This document shows, one piece after another, positions 1,034 through 64,000 of a stretch of 64,000 bases of DNA. Origin of the DNA: Trichoplax adhaerens (lineage: Eukaryota; Animalia; Placozoa). The notes beneath the pieces were generated by a model. That model saw nothing but the letters and a program-made list of their open reading frames with translations. It did not search any database and had not been told where the DNA came from. The stretch is from NCBI RefSeq assembly GCF_000150275.1, contig NW_002060961.1, positions 1,082,172-1,146,171 of the forward strand, written 5' to 3'. A program made the translations under genes and the position numbers. Numbering within the stretch: position 1 is the stretch's first letter; each line of letters begins with the position of its first letter.

Positions 1034-3966
1034 CTAAAAACAAAATTAAAATACTGCATCTATTGATCTGGTATAGGAATAACACCCCTTTTCCATTCAA
1101 GTTGTTTTGATCTTAAATGGCTGTAGACAATACCGAAATTATTTGATAAAAATCCAAATAGTATTTGCTTTACTTTGTTTCAAGCTGATATTGCAGCCGT
1201 TAAAACTGTCAAAACTACCTCTATCTTAATCATTTCTATGATCAACTTCTCAGAATTACACTTCACTCTTTAAATCGTACAGCGAATTTTGAAAGAGACT
1301 TAAATCATATTCTCTGTATTGCTCAACTATCTTCAGAAAACAGCGTTATTCCAAGAAATAATTGTAATAACATTATTAATATCAATATAGCAAAAATATA
1401 GAATTATTGATCAGATTTTAATCCCTCATTCTAATTAATATCAACTCATTGGACAATTAGAAGTCGCTTTTTACACAAATATTCTCAAGATCTGCCTCAA
1501 AGTAAGTTAACTTCATACTATTCATGTCTGAATTGTTTTTGATTAGAAGGATTTCAACATCCAAAATATCAACTTTATTTTATCAGTTCTTTACCTTTCA
1601 ACATCATGATGCAATTTATAACTAAAATAGCAATACTCTATATAGTAGATGTCTTTAATGTTGGATTTAGTGGTAGCGATTAAGGCTAGACAAATCTGAC
1701 ATACCGCAGCACCTAGTTCAATTTAGCGTATAGCTCAATAAGGTGTAATTATTAACAACTTCTGTCTAGCTAAAATTTTAGATTGTATAATGTGGTCCGA
1801 GAAATCATTTTCAGAAAATATTTGTTCAAAATTTTTGATAGGAATAGTTGATAAAATACGGCTAATAGTCTACAAACAGAAAATAAATTACTTTGCTGGC
1901 TTAAAATAATTCAAGATTTTCTGATATTATACGAGTATTGTCACGAAATTTGATATTTCTCATATTCTCCAAGTATCTGTTGTATTGCTTGGTTACTACA
2001 GTAAGAAAGATCAAAATTGCCAGTAAATTGATAATATTACCATAAAATATGAATGAAAATTTTACTAATCGTATGCAATTAACTGTTTTGCTCAGAACTA
2101 GATGAATGATATATACTATAACAGTTATGAGTGAGAAATTAGCGTAACATCTTTTTTCACTAAATCTATTAAACCGGACATTTAAGGCGCTACTATTGTG
2201 CTACTTGAAGAAGTAATTTACCCAATGCTGACTATTTTATCTTGCTTAATAGAAATAGTTTCATCGCAATTACTGTGATGCTATACAATGTTTAATAATA
2301 GGTCAGAATAAAACGGATTTTCATGTCTAATAAAGGTATTTTATAAAGGACTAAAGAAAGAAAATACTTTCGAGTTAAGTGCTTATCAGTTCATAAAGTT
2401 TGATTGAAGATCAGTACTGTCCACATCGTAATGTCGAGTTTTGAGTGTAGATAGGCTGAAATGGCGTTACTCTTCGATTTTAGTCACGAACTGAGAAACA
2501 TTAACGACATGGAAAGGATGCTAGTGCCTCATTTTGTAGATGATCCATACTATCCAATATTAATTACTACAAGTGCAACATCTTATTGCGTAGAATGCTA
2601 GCTCATGAAGGTGTGAGAGTTTTAATAAAACTCAGATCATCTCAAACCGAATCTTATTTTAATTTTACTATCTTCGGAAGATTGATGGTAATATAGGCAA
2701 ATATTTATTGTTATCACCGGTGAAATAATACAATCAGTGCAATATCAACATTATATTGCTAAGCATGAATAATTTTTATTTGCTTCTTACTAATAAACTC
2801 ATTTCGGTAAAAATAATTTATAAACACCTTATGAAGTTAATTATCATCTTTAAGGCTTGCTTAAAAATTTAGTTCCAATTTTAATTCATCTCTTCCAACA
2901 TTTACAATTGAAATTATTAGAGTTTTTTTGGCTATAACATGAGTGTTCCTACGATAATTCATTAGTAATTACCAAAATTGAAACGATGTATAGCTGTTTA
3001 AGCATGAATAATGATACGCAAAAGATGATTCTTGAATGACTCTTTCTTATTAAAAAATTTCATAATATAATTGTATCAATTTGGCCTACATACGGGATCA
3101 CAGATGCTCAAACAAAGTACACTATTTTTTATTTATTACTTCTTTGCGCTGATTAATTATCGATAGAAACTAAAGATTAGTTGTCTAGATAGCAATTCAG
3201 AACTGAATTTGGACTTCTGTAAACTTACAAACTCACCCAATACCGAGATAAAGGAATCTTAAAATTTTAAATTACATAGGTGTGATTTCATTGGTAGTTA
3301 TAGCGAAACTGTAATTTTATTGGGCCACCTTTAAAAATCTTCCTGAAGTGCAATATTGACAATCGCTTCACTAACATTCACGTTCCTTCTTTCATGATGA
3401 TCTTGCAGCCTCTATTATTAAAACAATCTGGGTTACGTTATCTAATCTAAATAGGATGCTATTATGAAATGAATAAATTATCTTTCCTTTTACAATCGCT
3501 AATTGCAATTTCATTTTACTATGTATAGGTGAATGATTCTAATCGTAAACAATGGAAGATAAAAAAATGTTTTTCTAATAGCTATTGGTCCCATTTAGCT
3601 TGATTATCAACATCCGTCATCCTTTAATTTCAATCTTCCATCGGATAAAAATCATTATAGAAGTATGCTTTTGTTATTATATTCAAAGTGGCAAAACAAG
3701 ATCGAAAAATACTGATCATAAATTTATAGATTTAGGAGCTGGTTCAATAATAATAATCTATTATCACATAGGCTTTATCAATACTTTTAGCCATAATGCA
3801 TTCATGTATAATATTGTATTATAGATCAATTTTCAAATGCAAAGCTCTATATTCTATTACAATAGGTATATAGGATTTATTTTCTGTTGTATGCAATTAT
3901 TAATCTTCTATTTTTATTTAAAATAGATCATTTTTCAAGACATCGCCTGTTGACAGCACGTACACG

Positions 3967-15216: not shown

Positions 15217-16365
15217 TTATTTAATGCTTTTTTTGTTGATTGTGACTGACATGTTAAGGTTCAAATCAGAATAACGTCGAAGTGTACTATCGAGTGTTAT
15301 ACAATGCTCACGTTTGATATCACCAAAACGGAAATATTTTAAAACATGGCTTCGCAGATCGGCAGTAAAGAATACGTAAATAAGCGGGCAAACCGCTGGA
15401 TAGGAAAAGGCGAAATATTGACTGATGCGTACAACGGTAGCTTGTAAATGTGTAATACGAGTGGATAAATAGAGGGATAGGAAGGTGATTACATAAGGCA
15501 TCCAAAAGAGGATAAATACACCAACAATGATGGCCATACTTCGTAATGCTTTAATATTGCGTATGATGGCATGCGTTGGGGTGGACGAAGGGCCATTCTG
15601 AAAGTATTGCTGGCGCCGCGTGTGATCATTGACAATAATTAAGATACGTCCATAGACAAAAACTAATACTATAAGGGGAATAAAAAATAATACAGTAAAT
15701 AATAATATTAAATAGACACGATGTTCGACAACGTCAGTTGGTCTTAACTGGACACATCGATGGCTAGAAAATTTCAAAAATGAGACTAAGGGTATAAAAA
15801 TAGCCAAAATGGGCAAGAACCATACGATAGCAATGAAGATCGCCGCTAGTCGTGGAGTAGCACGACGATTGTAACTAAATGGATGCGTTACTGAAACATA
15901 ACGATCGAAACTGACTAAACAAATGTGAGAATTTAAAATTAAAATAAACAAGATTCCGTTCATGGGAAGTAGTGTACAAGCAGCAGCATTTCGGCGCAAG
16001 TTGAGAATTTCATACAATGCCCATCGTGGCATTAAATAAGTGAGCGAATAACAAATTGCTGCCACCGCCATACTTGCAATCATCGCATTGGAGACATGAT
16101 GCAACGAACGATGCAGTGCAATGAGTAGAATTAACAGGCCATTGGTAGTGATGGTTAAAGCAGAAATAATGGAATAAGTGATTAATTTTTCCACAATGGC
16201 CGGTGGTATCGTGGCGGCGATCGTTGGCGTTGCATTTAGCGTGTTATTGCAAGTTGTCACCATGTTGGCCATACTGTGATTGCTTGTTGATGGAAGATGG
16301 GTATCATTGGACCAAGAAGAAATGGTAGTATTGCTATTCCAATTATTCATCCTGTCGTCATGCAT
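15217..16365 (-). CDS. Orphan class A GPCR (YLxPRW / FSYPA family)
   Basis: ORF with N-glycosylation-rich N-terminus, 7 TM segments, VSFDRY, FILFWMPY and AFSYPAVCPLIY. The track start (16368) is TTG; the first ATG is at 16365. Confidence 0.92.
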   Translation of the reverse strand: MHDDRMNNWNSNTTISSWSNDTHLPSTSNHSMANMVTTCNNTLNATPTIAATIPPAIVEKLITYSIISALTITTNGLLILLIALHRSLHHVSNAMIASMAVAAICYSLTYLMPRWALYEILNLRRNAAACTLLPMNGILFILILNSHICLVSFDRYVSVTHPFSYNRRATPRLAAIFIAIVWFLPILAIFIPLVSFLKFSSHRCVQLRPTDVVEHRVYLILLFTVLFFIPLIVLVFVYGRILIIVNDHTRRQQYFQNGPSSTPTHAIIRNIKALRSMAIIVGVFILFWMPYVITFLSLYLSTRITHLQATVVRISQYFAFSYPAVCPLIYVFFTADLRSHVLKYFRFGDIKREHCITLDSTLRRYSDLNLNMSVTINKKSIK

Positions 16366-16909
16366 CAACGTTATCCAGTGGAGATTGAATGGAGATTTTC
16401 AACCGGCACCCAAGGTTGAACAAGAAGCCAAATTTTTGAAATGATAAGAAGAAGAAATTGCACCCTACATCAATAATATGCAGAATGGCTTATTTACATA
16501 TTGCAATCGATGCTTATCTAGTCAACAATGTTGTCAAGCATTACAAATGGATCAGCAAACAGTATCAAGGATGGCCCACTTATCATGTATCATGCATGAC
16601 TGATGGCTTCATGGTTGGAATTAGAATGGAATTGCACCCATCCAACACGGCCAATTAAAAGGACAAACCCGATTGCAAGCAAACTCGACAAGAATAACAA
16701 CAGATTTGATTAAGCTGCAATCGACGATTGGATTAGCGATAGTTGGCCACCCCCAAAAAATTTCTACCTCCGATCAGCCGACGATGAAGATGGGCGGGTT
16801 CGATTAGACTATGACCAATGGGCGGTTGAGGTTGGCTTTGAATGAGTGTCGTGCGTCTTGATCGATCGTGTTTCCACGCGAAGTGGTATCGCACCGGCAT
16901 TGAAGCGAT

Positions 16910-17582
16910 ATTGTCCTGTCAGTCGACCTGAGACCGGTTGGGTCCGGGCCGAGTTGGATCGGTCGTCTCAGCTACAGTACACAGTACCCTAGCACGGTAG
17001 ACTCTACAGTGTACAGTACTGTCATGACTGCAGTCAGGTTTTGGCAGCCAACATACCGATACTGTGCGTATCGGTACGCGCTGGACTGACTACAGTCTCT
17101 GTCGACATGCAGGTTTGCTGTACTGTACACTGTACACTGTACGCGGTAGTGTCCACAGTGTCCAGGACCAACGCCAGTCAGTCTACAGTACATACTAGCC
17201 GTACAGTGTACAGTCTACAGTATCCGCCATGAACGACAGTACCGTACTGTAGAGGAAATTGTCCTGGAGCAATGTCGGTCGACCTGAGACCGATTAGGTC
17301 CAGGCCGAGTCGGATCGGTCGTCTGGACTACAGTACACAGTACTGTAGCCTAGCACGGTAGACTCTGTACTGTACAGTACTGTACTGTCCGTTTGGCAGC
17401 CAACATACCGGTCCGTATCGGTACGCGCTAGACTGAGCACAGTCGCTGTCGACATCCAGGTTTGCTGTACTGTACTGTACTGTACTGTCCTGTACCAACG
17501 CCAGTCAGTCTACTGTACTGTACTGTACAGTACTAGCCGTACAGTGTACAGTCTACAGTACACCACCGCACTGTAGTGGAAA
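16910..17582. repeat. Two diverged tandem GC-rich units (~348 and ~325 bp) interleaved with ACAGT/ACTGT pentamer tracts
   Basis: Unit A starts ATTGTCCTG at 16910 and unit B at 17258. Shared blocks include GTCGACCTGAGACCG, GGATCGGTCGTCT, TTGGCAGCCAACATACCG and ACCAACGCCAGTCAGTCTAC. Confidence 0.85.
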
Positions 17583-17698
17583 TGGCCACTCCTATCCAAT
17601 GCACCTGTCACTTCAATCATTCACGTCACAAAGTCGAGTGACGCATGTCCAAATGGACTGCGGTTAGACCTGAGAAAGGTTCGGTGCGGTTCCAAACC

Positions 17699-18379
17699 GT
17701 GATGATCTATATGTCTGGGTAAAATGAACGACCTGACTATTGGAGGACGCGATTGCAATTTTTTTTTCGCCTTGCAATGTGGTCGAGTGTGGAAGGAGGA
17801 GAAGAAGTTGCAATTGCTTCTAGACTTTTAGTGTCCAGTAATGATCTATGTCTGGGTAAAATGAACGACCTGACTATTGGAGGACGCGATTGCAATTTTT
17901 TTTTCGCCTTGCAATGTGGTCGAGTGTGGAAGGAGAAGAAGAAGTTGCAATTGCTTCTAGACTTTTAGTGTCCAGTAATGATCTATGTCTGGGTAAAATG
18001 AACGACCTGACTATTGGAGGACGCGATTGCAATTTTTTTTTCGCCTTGCAATGTGGTAGAGTGTGGAAGGAGGAGAAGAAGTTGCAATTGCTTCTAGTGT
18101 CCAGTAATGATCGATGTCTGGATTAAATGAACGACCTGACTATTAGCGGACGCGATTGCAATTTCTTTTTTTTTTCGCCTTGCAATGTGGTAGAGTGTGG
18201 AAGGAGGAGAAGAAGTTGCAATTGCTTCTAGACTTTTAGTGTCCAGTAATGATCTATGTCTGGGTTAAATGAACGACCTGACTATTGGCGGACGCGATTG
18301 CAATTTCTTTTTTTCGCCTTGCAATGTGGTCGAGTGTAGAAGGAGAAGAAGAAGTTGCAATTGCTTCTAGTGTCCAGTA
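17699..18379 (+). repeat. Tandem array of five 129-142-bp units, each containing a long imperfect hairpin
   Basis: Units start at 17699, 17838, 17975, 18104 and 18246. They are near-identical, with the arm GCGATTGCAAT9CGCCTT pairing to AAGGAGGAGAAGAAGTTGCAATTGC. Confidence 0.95.
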
Positions 18380-21300
18380 GATTAAACCGACACACCATGC
18401 CGTGCCAATCAGACTTTTTTGACACTATTTTTATCAGTAATGGATGACTTCTGCACAAACACAAATAGAGTAAATACAGTTCAAGACTGAAATCGTTTTC
18501 AAGCTTGCGATAGTTGGCTCAAGTGCGACACCAGTACAAGACGCGTATTTTACAAGAAATTTCCAACAGTCCCATGCCCCAATCTACCAACTGCGACTTC
18601 TTTCCCTCAAAAGTTCCTGTAACTAGCATACTATATTGTCGATTCTACATTTCCAAAAAACGTCAATGGCCTTGCATTTCTCTTTGTAGCTTGGTCACTA
18701 CAGTATTACTAGTGCAATCATAATATGCAATCAATACAGTAAATGCGTTCTGTAAAACAATCAAAATCATAATCACGTCGATGGTGTGGTGAACCTCGGC
18801 AATGGCTTACTCCCGATAGCAAGGCAATATCCGGCCAATTTGAAAGAACAAATGGACAATGTTACCCTATGCAAATAAAAAGTCATGACCGTGGATCACT
18901 GCTTACGAGCATATCGACATGACTACCGACTCGCCATGACGTCAAGCTGGATCGTAGGAGAAAACATAGACTTATCAAGTAATTGCTGAAGTAGTTCTAG
19001 CAGTAGTGACTGCAGCACAAATGCAATAACAGTCAATAAAGAATATTGTATCGACGTCATCTTAGCGCTAATCCAAACTCCAACGGAAATCATTGATGCT
19101 ACAGTATGATTCCAAGTCAGGCAGTGAGATTGTACATCAATGATCCTTGGCAATTTAGTGGGCAAATGAACGAATGGAATAAAATCAAATTGGCAGGAAA
19201 TTGAGTTTCTTGTCCTATTTTCAGATACTTTATATTAATTAAGCAAAGAATCAATCATTTGTATTCTTTGCATTTCTTTGTTCAACAGTTGCATAGGCAT
19301 TCTCTTACTGTACGCATGGAGATTTTACTTACTATAGATGTTATATAATATAGTCCTTCGACATAAAATAGCATTGGTAGAACTACACGAATGGTAACAG
19401 TAGCACACGAACAATCCAAATCCCTTTTCTTCACGCTAACTCAGTCACGAAAACCTTTTTCAGAACACTATTGACGAGTAACTTCTACTTGCAAGAATAG
19501 CAATGGCGCTCGCTTTACTTCGCATACTGCGTGGACTTGCATTTTCTACTCGCTAATTGATCCATTGGTATTGACACTACGAGAATGACATTGACTAATT
19601 TTCAGTTGTATCATCAGTAGCCTGGTTTTAAACTTGAATGATTTGAACTTATCTATCCTCTTTTGTAGTGGAGCTACTTTTAACTGGTTAAAAGTAGCTT
19701 TACACGAGCAGTGTATATTACAAAGATAAGCCAAAATTGGACGTTTACATCTTATGAATTAGTTAATGATACTCATGTAGTCAATAAAATAGGTGAGATC
19801 TGCGGCAAATGGAAAATAAATTAAAAAGAAATGGACGTCTAAAAATTGTCTGTTATGCTATTACCAGTATATCCTTAGCTAGTGGCGAAGGATTTTTGAT
19901 CTTGTAATGAAATACTCGATCGGCATATTGGGACAGTCGATACTAATAGCCAATACGAAGAACGACGCGAAAAAGGATATCAAAAATGAGCGTTATGATT
20001 GCCACTTGCATCCTTAGCCATACTGAGTAGATCTATCGTCTTGATGATCAAGGAGTTACATCATGAAATTGTGATTTTTTTACTGTATTTAAACTTTGTG
20101 GTTGCAAAGGATAGCTCAAATGACATCGGCAATGTTTATTGTGGCATACTCGCACTCGATGCGGTCAATAATAGCATTCATTAGTCCACAGCACGGTCAA
20201 TAAGGACGAGAATAGAATCACAGCGATCCATTTTCTCATACGTCATCAGCCGGTAAATTGTTGGCGACATTAATGTCAAGTTTTCATTTTCTTATTAGAG
20301 TTAGAAATTCACACGGATATTCTCCATAGTTGTAGCCCGAAACAAATTGTTACTATGTAGGCATACAACGTCAAGGGAATGGGCAATTGTACAGCAATTA
20401 TCCCTTGTGCTTTCATCTAGTAACCTAATAGCAACTCATAAAGGATAATAGTATATTTTCCATACCGTAGGTTAGAAAAATATCGAGAATTCTATTACTG
20501 CGCGCGATATGCCATACATTGGTATGGCATGTGTTGTGGTAATAGAATTCTTTCATAAAATCTTCACAGTCATTAGATTGGAGAAACCTTGTCGATAATA
20601 TAGTTAAGAAAAAATTGATTACGCTATAGCGACTGCCTACTAATGAAGAACCTAAATGAGGAAATTTTCCACAGCGCAATGACGGTATTATTGCTTTAGT
20701 CGAAGTAGTAACCCATTTTTTCGTTTTTAAAATTGATTTCTAGTATGGCAAAATTAAGCCTTTCATACAGACTGCTTTGTATTCAGCTATGAAAGACTCC
20801 AACAACAATGAACAACTATAGATTCCCAGAAAAGTAGATTAATGTATACCCCATTCATTTTTAGGTATTAACAATAATTGACTATACGTACTAATCATGA
20901 ATTCAATAAAAGACAAAATTACTTAATGACACAGTAACTGTGGCGTTGGACAGGATCGTTAGAAATCTGAAGGCCTAATAAAAACTAAAAACGAACACAA
21001 TCTATCTTTCTTACGCCTATCTCTTGTGCAAGCAATCTATACGGGGAGACAATTTCTTGCCTTAAGCTGTGCATTGATCATGAATAGTTACAAACACGAT
21101 GTTAGTATACTCGGATAGAAAGTATCGATGCTTTAGTAGAAAGAAAGTTCTAATCGTCATACCATGTAGTCTTCGAGTGTTACTATCTACATAATGACGT
21201 TATAACTAGCAAAATTACAGGATCAAATCTTATTCTACTCGCGGGATAAGAATATATCTCCTTCATTTAGCATTAGCAATAATTTTATGATCAAGATCGA

Positions 21301-62947: not shown

Positions 62948-63400
62948 TCAAAGCTATTTTTAGTACAGTGTACTGTACTGTACTGTACTGTACTGTACTG
63001 TATGTACTGTACCGTAGCCTACGAAACTTCATACTGTACACTGTACAGGACAGTACCATACAGGATGATGCAGCAAGCTGTATCATGACCAAGTCTAGCT
63101 ATTATACTGTACTGTACAGTACTGTACGGTGTAGACATACAGTACTTAGAACAGTCATGGTACCCTAGCGTACAGTACTGTACAGTATTGTACTGTACAG
63201 TACTGTACAGTGTACAGTACAGTGTACAGTGCGTAGTAGTACTGTAATCAAAGCTATTTTTAGTACAGTGTACAGTACTGTACTGTACTGTACCGTAGCC
63301 TACGAAACTTCATACTGTACACTGTACAGGACAGTACCATACAGGATGATGCAGCAAGCTGTATCATGACCAAGTCTAGCTGCTATACTGTACGGTGTAG
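62948..63400. repeat. ACTGT/ACAGT-rich tandem repeat, 300-bp period (one full plus one partial unit visible)
   Basis: TCAAAGCTATTTTTAGTACAGTG at 62948 and 63248. The block CCGTAGCCTACGAAAC...CAAGTCTAGCT is repeated, with (TACTG)n tracts of variable length. Confidence 0.9.
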
Positions 63401-64000
63401 GCGTTCAACACCCCACCGTACGGTAGTCAGAATTGTGTTGATGTCGCTGAAAGTGTTTCGTCATCATGTAGCTTCAATCACAACAAATCGAATCCTGGCA
63501 ACCGGCCGCGATAGGCTACAGCAGCAGCTTGAATGGTGATGGAGTTCCCTCAATTAGGCCAAAATTGCTCCAATCCTCAATGCTCAAGATTAGGTAGATG
63601 GCCACCATTGACATCAGTGATAGTACAAGTAGAGTAGAGAGTACTGATACCTATTTTTCAAATGCAGTTGCTACTTGCTTGCTACAATCTTACTGTCAGG
63701 GATGATGTTGATGACATTGTTTTGCGGATAGGATAGGGATGGCATGATCAATGAATAGGCTCAATTTGCTTTGCAGTTGCTAATCGATCTTATTAGAGAG
63801 GAAAAGATGTGGGAAATGCCACAATTTGTACTAGACTCATTCTATTAGTAAATAAAAGCTGGAGTCAGCATGCTGTAGTTGAAGAATATCCCATCTCATA
63901 AATCGCCATGACGCCAGTTGATAGTCTTGCCCTAGTATGACTTACCTTCCATTCGAGGTGCTGTAAAATGGTGTGTAGAAAGTACTACTGACGTAGCCTA

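Follow-up and report, generated by a model that had tools for sequence, protein, structure and literature searches.

[quoted passage not shown] It comprises a gene for a rhodopsin-type GPCR, a GC-rich island, a solo copy of a dispersed element and, directly behind this copy, a tandem array whose units form hairpins on the + strand. In its source, the orthologue of the GPCR in Trichoplax sp. H2 is labelled a D(5)-like dopamine receptor. The gene and the array are 1342 nt apart and on opposite strands, in agreement with the 1.3 kb given in an earlier description made from the letters of the DNA (the sequence-only reading), which had taken the array for a possible precursor of small or structured RNAs.

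Table 1. Features of the window and loci at other copies of the ~47-nt element. MFE is in kcal/mol; z-scores are relative to dinucleotide shuffles.
Feature	Position	Strand	Repeat unit	MFE	z (+)	z (-)	Remarks
Rhodopsin-type GPCR gene	15217..16368	-					383-aa ORF; relatives carry Pfam 7tm_1; divergent from the + strand of the array
GC-rich island, two ~350-bp repeats	16913..17620	.					GC 0.49-0.53 against 0.27-0.40 nearby
Solo ~47-nt dispersed TIR-like element	17664..17712	+					starts TAGACCTGAGAAAGG; sharply bounded; directly before the array
Tandem array	17710-18379
Hairpin 1	17738..17840	+	17710-17846	-44.9	-3.99	-0.67	~36 bp; 20-bp core 17749-17817
Hairpin 2	17875..17977	+	17847-17983	-45.4	-4.42	-2.10	U:G>U:A in core stem
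Hairpin 3	18012..18106	+	17984-18112	-46.4	-5.30	-0.83	8-nt deletion in basal bulge; C>A in loop
Hairpin 4	18141..18248	+	18113-18254	-45.6	-3.86		T-tract expanded, with one C; pair-breaking G>A and A>C in basal stem
Hairpin 5	18283..18379	+	18255-18379	-44.8	-4.60		T-tract with C; U:G>U:A; 8-nt deletion; G>A breaking apical pair
Mini-element with two facing element copies (L027)	1491-1628						114 bp
Array near inner end of element (L031)	1104-1497
Array near inner end of element (L035)	1550-2346
Array near inner end of element (L044)	1582-2360
Further element-adjacent minisatellite loci							L019, L020, L033, L038

The array and the element beside it

The array has a period of 137 bp and 4.8 copies with 92-93% matches (score 1119-1121; TRF places its end at 18370 or 18379), and contains five complete hairpin-forming units on the + strand, whose alignment has a mean column identity of 93%. 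It is the only sizeable tandem repeat within the 64-kb window. The array is non-coding: its period cannot be divided by 3, the longest ORF is at most 78 aa, and a word search with this ORF, which runs across the array, in public assemblies including transcript-derived ones found no protein relative, although this negative is weak. The + strand of this region is rich in G+T, with a GC skew of +0.22 to +0.29 and an AT skew of -0.07 to -0.12.

The array forms the 3' part of an island of ~50% GC in DNA that otherwise has ~30-38% GC. Further upstream in the island, each of the two ~350-bp repeats is headed by a degenerate copy of the ~47-nt element (one at 16925), which is followed by palindromic microsatellites of the ACTGTAC type. 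This ACTGTAC-rich part has many dispersed matches in the genome, and the similarity of the 137-bp unit to the upstream island is limited to a low-complexity 16-mer. GC-rich stretches of ACTGTAC/GTACAGT microsatellites, of which the window holds 16913-17620 and 62969-63430 and further examples are L008, L009, L010 and L022, fold strongly on both strands, recur genome-wide and often lie near the ~47-nt element.

The first 25 nt of the element have 86 genomic matches at up to 2 mismatches (0 for the reversed control), and the flanks of its copies are unrelated on both sides. At one locus (L027) two facing copies are the ends of a mini-element that is flanked by a 9-bp direct repeat, and at another (L028) a copy is followed by an inverted fragment. 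Duplications of 9 bp typically accompany Mutator-type elements. The element thus appears to behave as a terminal inverted repeat (TIR); a right-hand partner was not found within 3 kb downstream of the copy studied here, where scores are at the null level. It resembles Mutator-type TIR remnants (PMC12221973) in being dispersed (~86 copies), sharply bounded, sometimes arranged in inverted pairs and in one case flanked by the direct repeat, although the hairpin unit itself lies outside the dispersed element and identity with the Mutator motif is putative. The anchors of placozoan promoter-hub loops, and promoters, carry a Mutator TIR motif (Kim et al., 2025; PMC12221973), which is printed in figures alone and which the ~47-nt element may match. 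Since the final ~10 nt of the element fall within the repeat period of the array, the tandem duplication would have begun at the element's inner end.

Twenty-seven other copies of the element were examined with their flanks, and at seven of these a locus-specific minisatellite with a period of 45-200 bp lies no more than 400 bp away. At three loci (L031, L035 and L044), as in the window, an array starts less than 40 nt from the same inner end of the element; at L035 each repeat unit holds an inverted fragment of the element's end. The sequences of these arrays are unrelated to the 137-bp unit. Fifteen such arrays were folded on both strands, and most are unremarkable. Four of the 15 reach z <= -3.8 on one strand or both, among them L044, whose layout matches that seen here; these z-scores were obtained with a different dinucleotide shuffle. 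A strongly folding unit is not rare among element-adjacent arrays, yet hairpins are not their general property. From these comparisons it looks as if the Mutator-like terminal repeat and locus-specific minisatellites are recurrently linked in this genome, with the inner end of the repeat possibly seeding duplication.

A one-stranded fold and the changes between copies

Folding against shuffled controls on both strands, a check suggested with the sequence-only reading, gave MFEs of -44.8 to -46.4 kcal/mol for the units on the + strand, with z-scores between -3.86 and -5.30, and none of the 200 dinucleotide shuffles was as stable; the five z-scores amount to one observation and not five, the units all being copies of one sequence. 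The minus strand folds poorly, with MFEs of -18.5 to -24.7 kcal/mol and z-scores of -0.67 to -2.10. Strand asymmetry is also found when the whole array is folded (z -5.97 on +, -2.0 on -) and when DNA folding parameters are used (z -3.4 against -0.8).

The hairpin spans 103 nt of the 137-nt unit and has ~36 pairs, a 13-nt loop and a 24-bp core. Five + strand-specific hairpins in tandem with a stem of ~35 bp had been proposed, and this description holds (~36 bp, with z down to -5.3 on the + strand and to -2.10 on the minus strand), as do all the details given for the core of unit 1, namely 20 uninterrupted pairs, five of them G:U, a G/A mismatch and CCUU/AAGG. The base of the stem was drawn differently. 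In place of an extension with TTCTAGTG, the MFE structure has the helices GGA/UCU and UAUUGGA/UCCAGUA, the latter formed across a bulge of 12 nt, which is reduced to 4 nt in units 3 and 5. The hairpins are indeed separated by spacers; these are, however, ~34 nt long rather than ~40, and hold a 7-bp mini-hairpin. The unit thus has the geometry of a pri-miRNA (a stem of ~35 bp, a terminal loop and single-stranded flanks), but with a 12-nt asymmetric bulge in its base.

Compared with the reverse complement of the 3' arm, the 5' arm differs by 7 transitions and 3 transversions, and all seven transitions give G:U on the + strand and A.C on the minus strand. This outcome has a two-sided probability of ~1/64, assuming symmetric decay of a perfect palindrome. 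The bias is the best argument for constraint at the RNA level, yet a weak one, the case coming from a scan that selects such loci. Five of the seven wobbles are due to a single T9 tract opposite a purine tract, which bears out the caveat, raised from the outset, that a U-tract gives wobbles easily. U can pair with A as well as with G, so that a T-tract facing a purine tract pairs only on the + strand; the fold is one-stranded for this reason.

Pairing was followed through an alignment of 11 units from two Trichoplax lineages (H1 and H2), with 7 distinct rows. The covariation that the sequence-only reading had looked to did not appear: compensatory (two-sided) changes number 0, and the covariation term of RNAalifold is +0.5. 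Seven of the 43 pairs vary, six being broken and one changing from U:G to U:A. All six substitutions at Watson-Crick pairs break pairing (five transitions giving A.C or C.A and one transversion, none giving a wobble), though the events are few and four of the six pair-breakers lie in peripheral helices outside the 24-bp core, which possibly are not real structure. Variable columns make up ~8% of the paired and ~7% of the unpaired positions. The changes that preserve pairing (U:G>U:A, and U>C in the T-tract of units 4-5) are all at G:U pairs, and they are uninformative because any transition at a wobble pair yields a Watson-Crick pair.

Several substitutions between copies had been said to preserve pairing. 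Those listed do exist (U:G>C:G, U:G>U:A and a C>A in the loop), but the six pair-breaking changes had been missed, and the U:G>C:G change of units 4-5 is accompanied by an expansion of the T-tract by 2 or 5 nt. Copies that mutate regardless of pairing had been named as an outcome that would speak against an RNA product, and this is the behaviour seen at the Watson-Crick pairs, few as the events are. The pattern of changes, on these few events, leans against selection on hairpin pairing in the array copies.

Occurrence in placozoans and the small-RNA context

In the genome (105.6 Mb, 1414 contigs) the unit has no match beyond its own five copies, so that the genome-wide search proposed earlier returned a single locus and no homologous copies elsewhere. 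A MITE-type element would be expected to have left many hairpin units with TIRs and target-site duplications scattered through the genome; these were likewise not found, only the adjacent ~47-nt element being dispersed.

The orthologous locus of Trichoplax sp. H2 was located through the neighbouring GPCR and is collinear, with ~99% identity. The array has 5.8 units there against 4.8 here, one extra in H2: units 2-5 of H1 are identical to units 3-6 of H2, and the two leading H2 units are each 1 base off unit 1 of H1. Among 18 kb aligned, the longest stretch free of differences between H1 and H2 is 16749-18435 (1686 nt, the runner-up having 842), which corresponds to the island and the array. 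Constraint was considered as a cause of this identity and rejected. The two assemblies are consensus sequences without phasing, and at ~80% of loci H1 and H2 have one identical allele in common (Kamm et al., 2018; PMC6057997), so that difference-free patches are expected; the extra H2 unit has changes of its own.

In a Logan contig of a more distant placozoan (L023), the 3.5 kb upstream of the orthologous GPCR gene (~78% identity) contain neither an array recognisable by BLAST, TRF or a covariance model nor a comparable hairpin; at ~78% nucleotide identity in the GPCR, intergenic DNA is not alignable, and the result means no recognisable array rather than proof of absence. A covariance model of the 11 units, run against the window, the H2 locus and two contigs of other placozoans, returned the known units and weak antisense echoes only. 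An exact-pattern scan of JGI metagenomes did not find the array, and an exact look-up of the Trichoplax GPCR protein among transcript contigs gave no record. A hairpin conserved in related taxa with compensatory change, as expected of a miRNA, was not found; the array was seen in H1 and H2 only.

Searches for known RNA families gave no match to Rfam for the array at E <= 1 (15-21 kb scanned) and no tRNA in the array with ARAGORN. A scan for bacterial-type promoters and terminators remained at chance level and is irrelevant for an animal genome. The 22-mers of both arms have no match in the genome at up to 2 mismatches, and at 3 mismatches only as many as the control. Arms complementary to a target gene, by which hpRNAs are recognised, were not found, the unit having no other genomic match and no near-complementary target. 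A C/D snoRNA was also considered, given GUGAUGA at 17699 and CUGA in each spacer, and was rejected: a proper C box is present at the first junction only, the boxes are ~27-32 nt apart, and no snoRNA model matches.

The small-RNA machinery of placozoans has been described in different ways. Argonaute, Dicer and Drosha were reported to be present in Trichoplax, and Pasha and miRNAs to be absent (Hertel et al., 2009; Maxwell et al., 2012); small-RNA sequencing of Trichoplax, which is cited in PMC2655684 and PMC3563456, reportedly yielded no miRNAs. DGCR8 was later found in Trichoplax sp. H2, on scaffolds missing from the reference assembly (Kamm et al., PMC6057997), a finding repeated by Bråte et al. 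(2018; PMC6206976), and the common statement that Trichoplax has no Pasha/DGCR8 thus goes back to a gap in the reference assembly. The genome analysed here has several loci with RNase III domains and one with a Piwi domain (Argonaute), and the placozoan Microprocessor and processing machinery is probably complete. In later papers, too, placozoans are regarded as animals without miRNAs and piRNAs. The premise of the sequence-only reading that placozoans lack canonical miRNAs accordingly stands in so far as none has been reported, but its background has changed with the finding of Pasha/DGCR8 in H2.

Interpretation of the array

We favour, with a probability of roughly 0.6, the reading of the array as a young, lineage-specific minisatellite whose unit incidentally holds an imperfect inverted repeat. 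In this model, a unique segment of ~137 bp that adjoined the inner end of a solo TIR-like remnant would have been duplicated head-to-tail, the repeat junction reusing the last ~10 nt of the element, and the copy number would then have drifted to five units here and six in Trichoplax sp. H2. By chance, the duplicated segment would have held an imperfect inverted repeat composed of palindromic GCAATTGC-type cores, the T9 tract facing the purine tract, and CCTT/AAGG, such that any + strand transcript would form five hairpins of ~36 bp. The hairpin would then be incidental, and the array would have no function as RNA. The array has the features of minisatellites, being a head-to-tail repeat with a unit in the ~10-200-bp range, confined to one locus, non-coding, and different in copy number between sister lineages; its units have diverged through point changes, slippage in homopolymers and small indels, as those of minisatellites do. 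It is unlike typical minisatellites in that the 137-bp unit holds a long imperfect inverted repeat, making a transcript unusually structured on one strand, and in that its start coincides exactly with the inner end of a terminal repeat of transposon type. Three observations count against the minisatellite reading: the strong one-stranded fold (z to -5.3 against -0.7), which covers 103 of the 137 nt; the formation of wobbles on the + strand by 7/7 transitions between the arms; and the presence of RNase III loci and one Argonaute in this genome and of DGCR8 in H2 (PMC6057997). The difference in copy number, for its part, is not evidence against function, because functional hpRNA arrays such as hp-CG4068 also vary (PMC10317233).

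An alternative, which we consider unlikely, is a polycistronic small-RNA precursor. A Pol II transcript of the + strand, divergent from the GPCR gene, would be cut by Drosha-DGCR8 and/or Dicer into RNAs of ~21-23 nt that enter the single Argonaute, making the array a young miRNA- or hpRNA-like cluster. The fold is significant and strand-specific; the stem length, 13-nt loop and single-stranded flanks are suitable; the seven transitions between the arms are all wobbles on the + strand; and RNase III and Piwi-domain genes are present here, and DGCR8 in H2 (PMC6057997, PMC6206976). A second hairpin with a + bias, present in a single copy, lies 2.1 kb downstream. Precedent comes from Drosophila hp-CG4068, a cluster of tandem hpRNA copies (20 in D. 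melanogaster, 9 in D. simulans) that derive from a single transcript and have a target gene (PMC10317233). The array is like such hpRNA clusters in its tandem hairpin units, possible single transcript, rapid change in copy number and restriction to a lineage. However, what defines an hpRNA is the production of Dicer-2-dependent siRNAs together with target-gene homology, whereas the array is known as a sequence and no target homology was found, matches of the arms at 3 mismatches being at chance level. With polycistronic animal miRNA clusters the array shares imperfect stems of ~35 bp, loops of more than 10 nt, single-stranded spacers and hairpins on the same strand. It departs from them in its conservation, which extends to two near-identical lineages and shows no compensatory evolution, the Watson-Crick substitutions all being disruptive, and in its large asymmetric basal bulge and its 5' arm, a low-complexity U-tract; and placozoans differ from miRNA-bearing animals in that no miRNA has been reported in them, nor did small-RNA sequencing of Trichoplax report any (cited in PMC2655684, PMC3563456). 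The T9-T10 runs exclude Pol III, and the lack of a transcript-derived match to the ORF in public assemblies is a further, weak negative. The sequence tests lean against the small-RNA reading. It seems quite improbable that the array is the first identified substrate of placozoan Drosha-DGCR8/Dicer, which would be a young cluster of 5-6 hairpins on the + strand of a transposon-seeded island.

Function may alternatively reside in the DNA. The island would then be a GC-rich regulatory or architectural region upstream of the GPCR gene, acting as a cluster of palindromic protein sites or as a promoter or loop anchor of the Mutator-TIR kind, with the RNA fold as a by-product. The array holds 20 of the 60 TTGCAAT sites of the window, three per unit, one of them ATTGCAAT, and it adjoins a TIR-like element, one copy of which is flanked by a 9-bp repeat typical of Mutator. 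Motifs of this type are found at placozoan loop anchors and promoters (PMC12221973), but the published motif is not given in the text and the identity of the element with it is only putative; moreover, GPCR genes belong to the cell-type-specific class, which is loop-less according to the same study. Palindromic sites leave the pairing of the T-tract with the purine tract unexplained, and beyond the array the sites are only weakly enriched: elsewhere in the window there are 10 occurrences of the palindrome ATTGCAAT, against 4.3 +/- 2.2 expected, a mild excess that might mark a transcription-factor site. A DNA-level role is, on balance, rather doubtful.

That the array belongs to a decayed non-autonomous Mutator-like element, as its internal or subterminal tandem repeat, and so is transposon cargo rather than host DNA duplicated in place, is very improbable: the array does lie directly against the TIR-like element's inner end, the L035 repeat unit includes an inverted fragment of the element's end and arrays recur beside other copies, but the unit is found nowhere else in the genome, no right-hand TIR scores above the null level within 3 kb, and the arrays at other copies are unrelated to the 137-bp unit.

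Placozoans are the textbook case of animals without miRNAs and piRNAs, and yet they keep several Dicers, Drosha, an Argonaute and, according to the H2 genome, DGCR8, with no known substrates. If the array were a hairpin small-RNA cluster, it would identify a substrate of Microprocessor or Dicer and represent a new small-RNA gene born by tandem duplication. If it is a minisatellite only, it warns that one-strand hairpins which beat shuffled controls arise easily from a T-tract facing a purine tract, and it provides one example of the recurrent link between Mutator-like terminal repeats and locus-specific minisatellites in this genome.

The single-copy hairpin downstream of the array (20485-20552, + strand) gave weak sub-threshold matches to Rfam models of an H/ACA snoRNA and of plant miRNAs, none of which is credible. 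It has 31 bp, a 4-nt loop and six G:U pairs, with an MFE of -47.1 and z-scores of -5.85 on the + and -4.4 on the minus strand, and one of its arms carries GCGCGCG where the other has GUGUUGUG.
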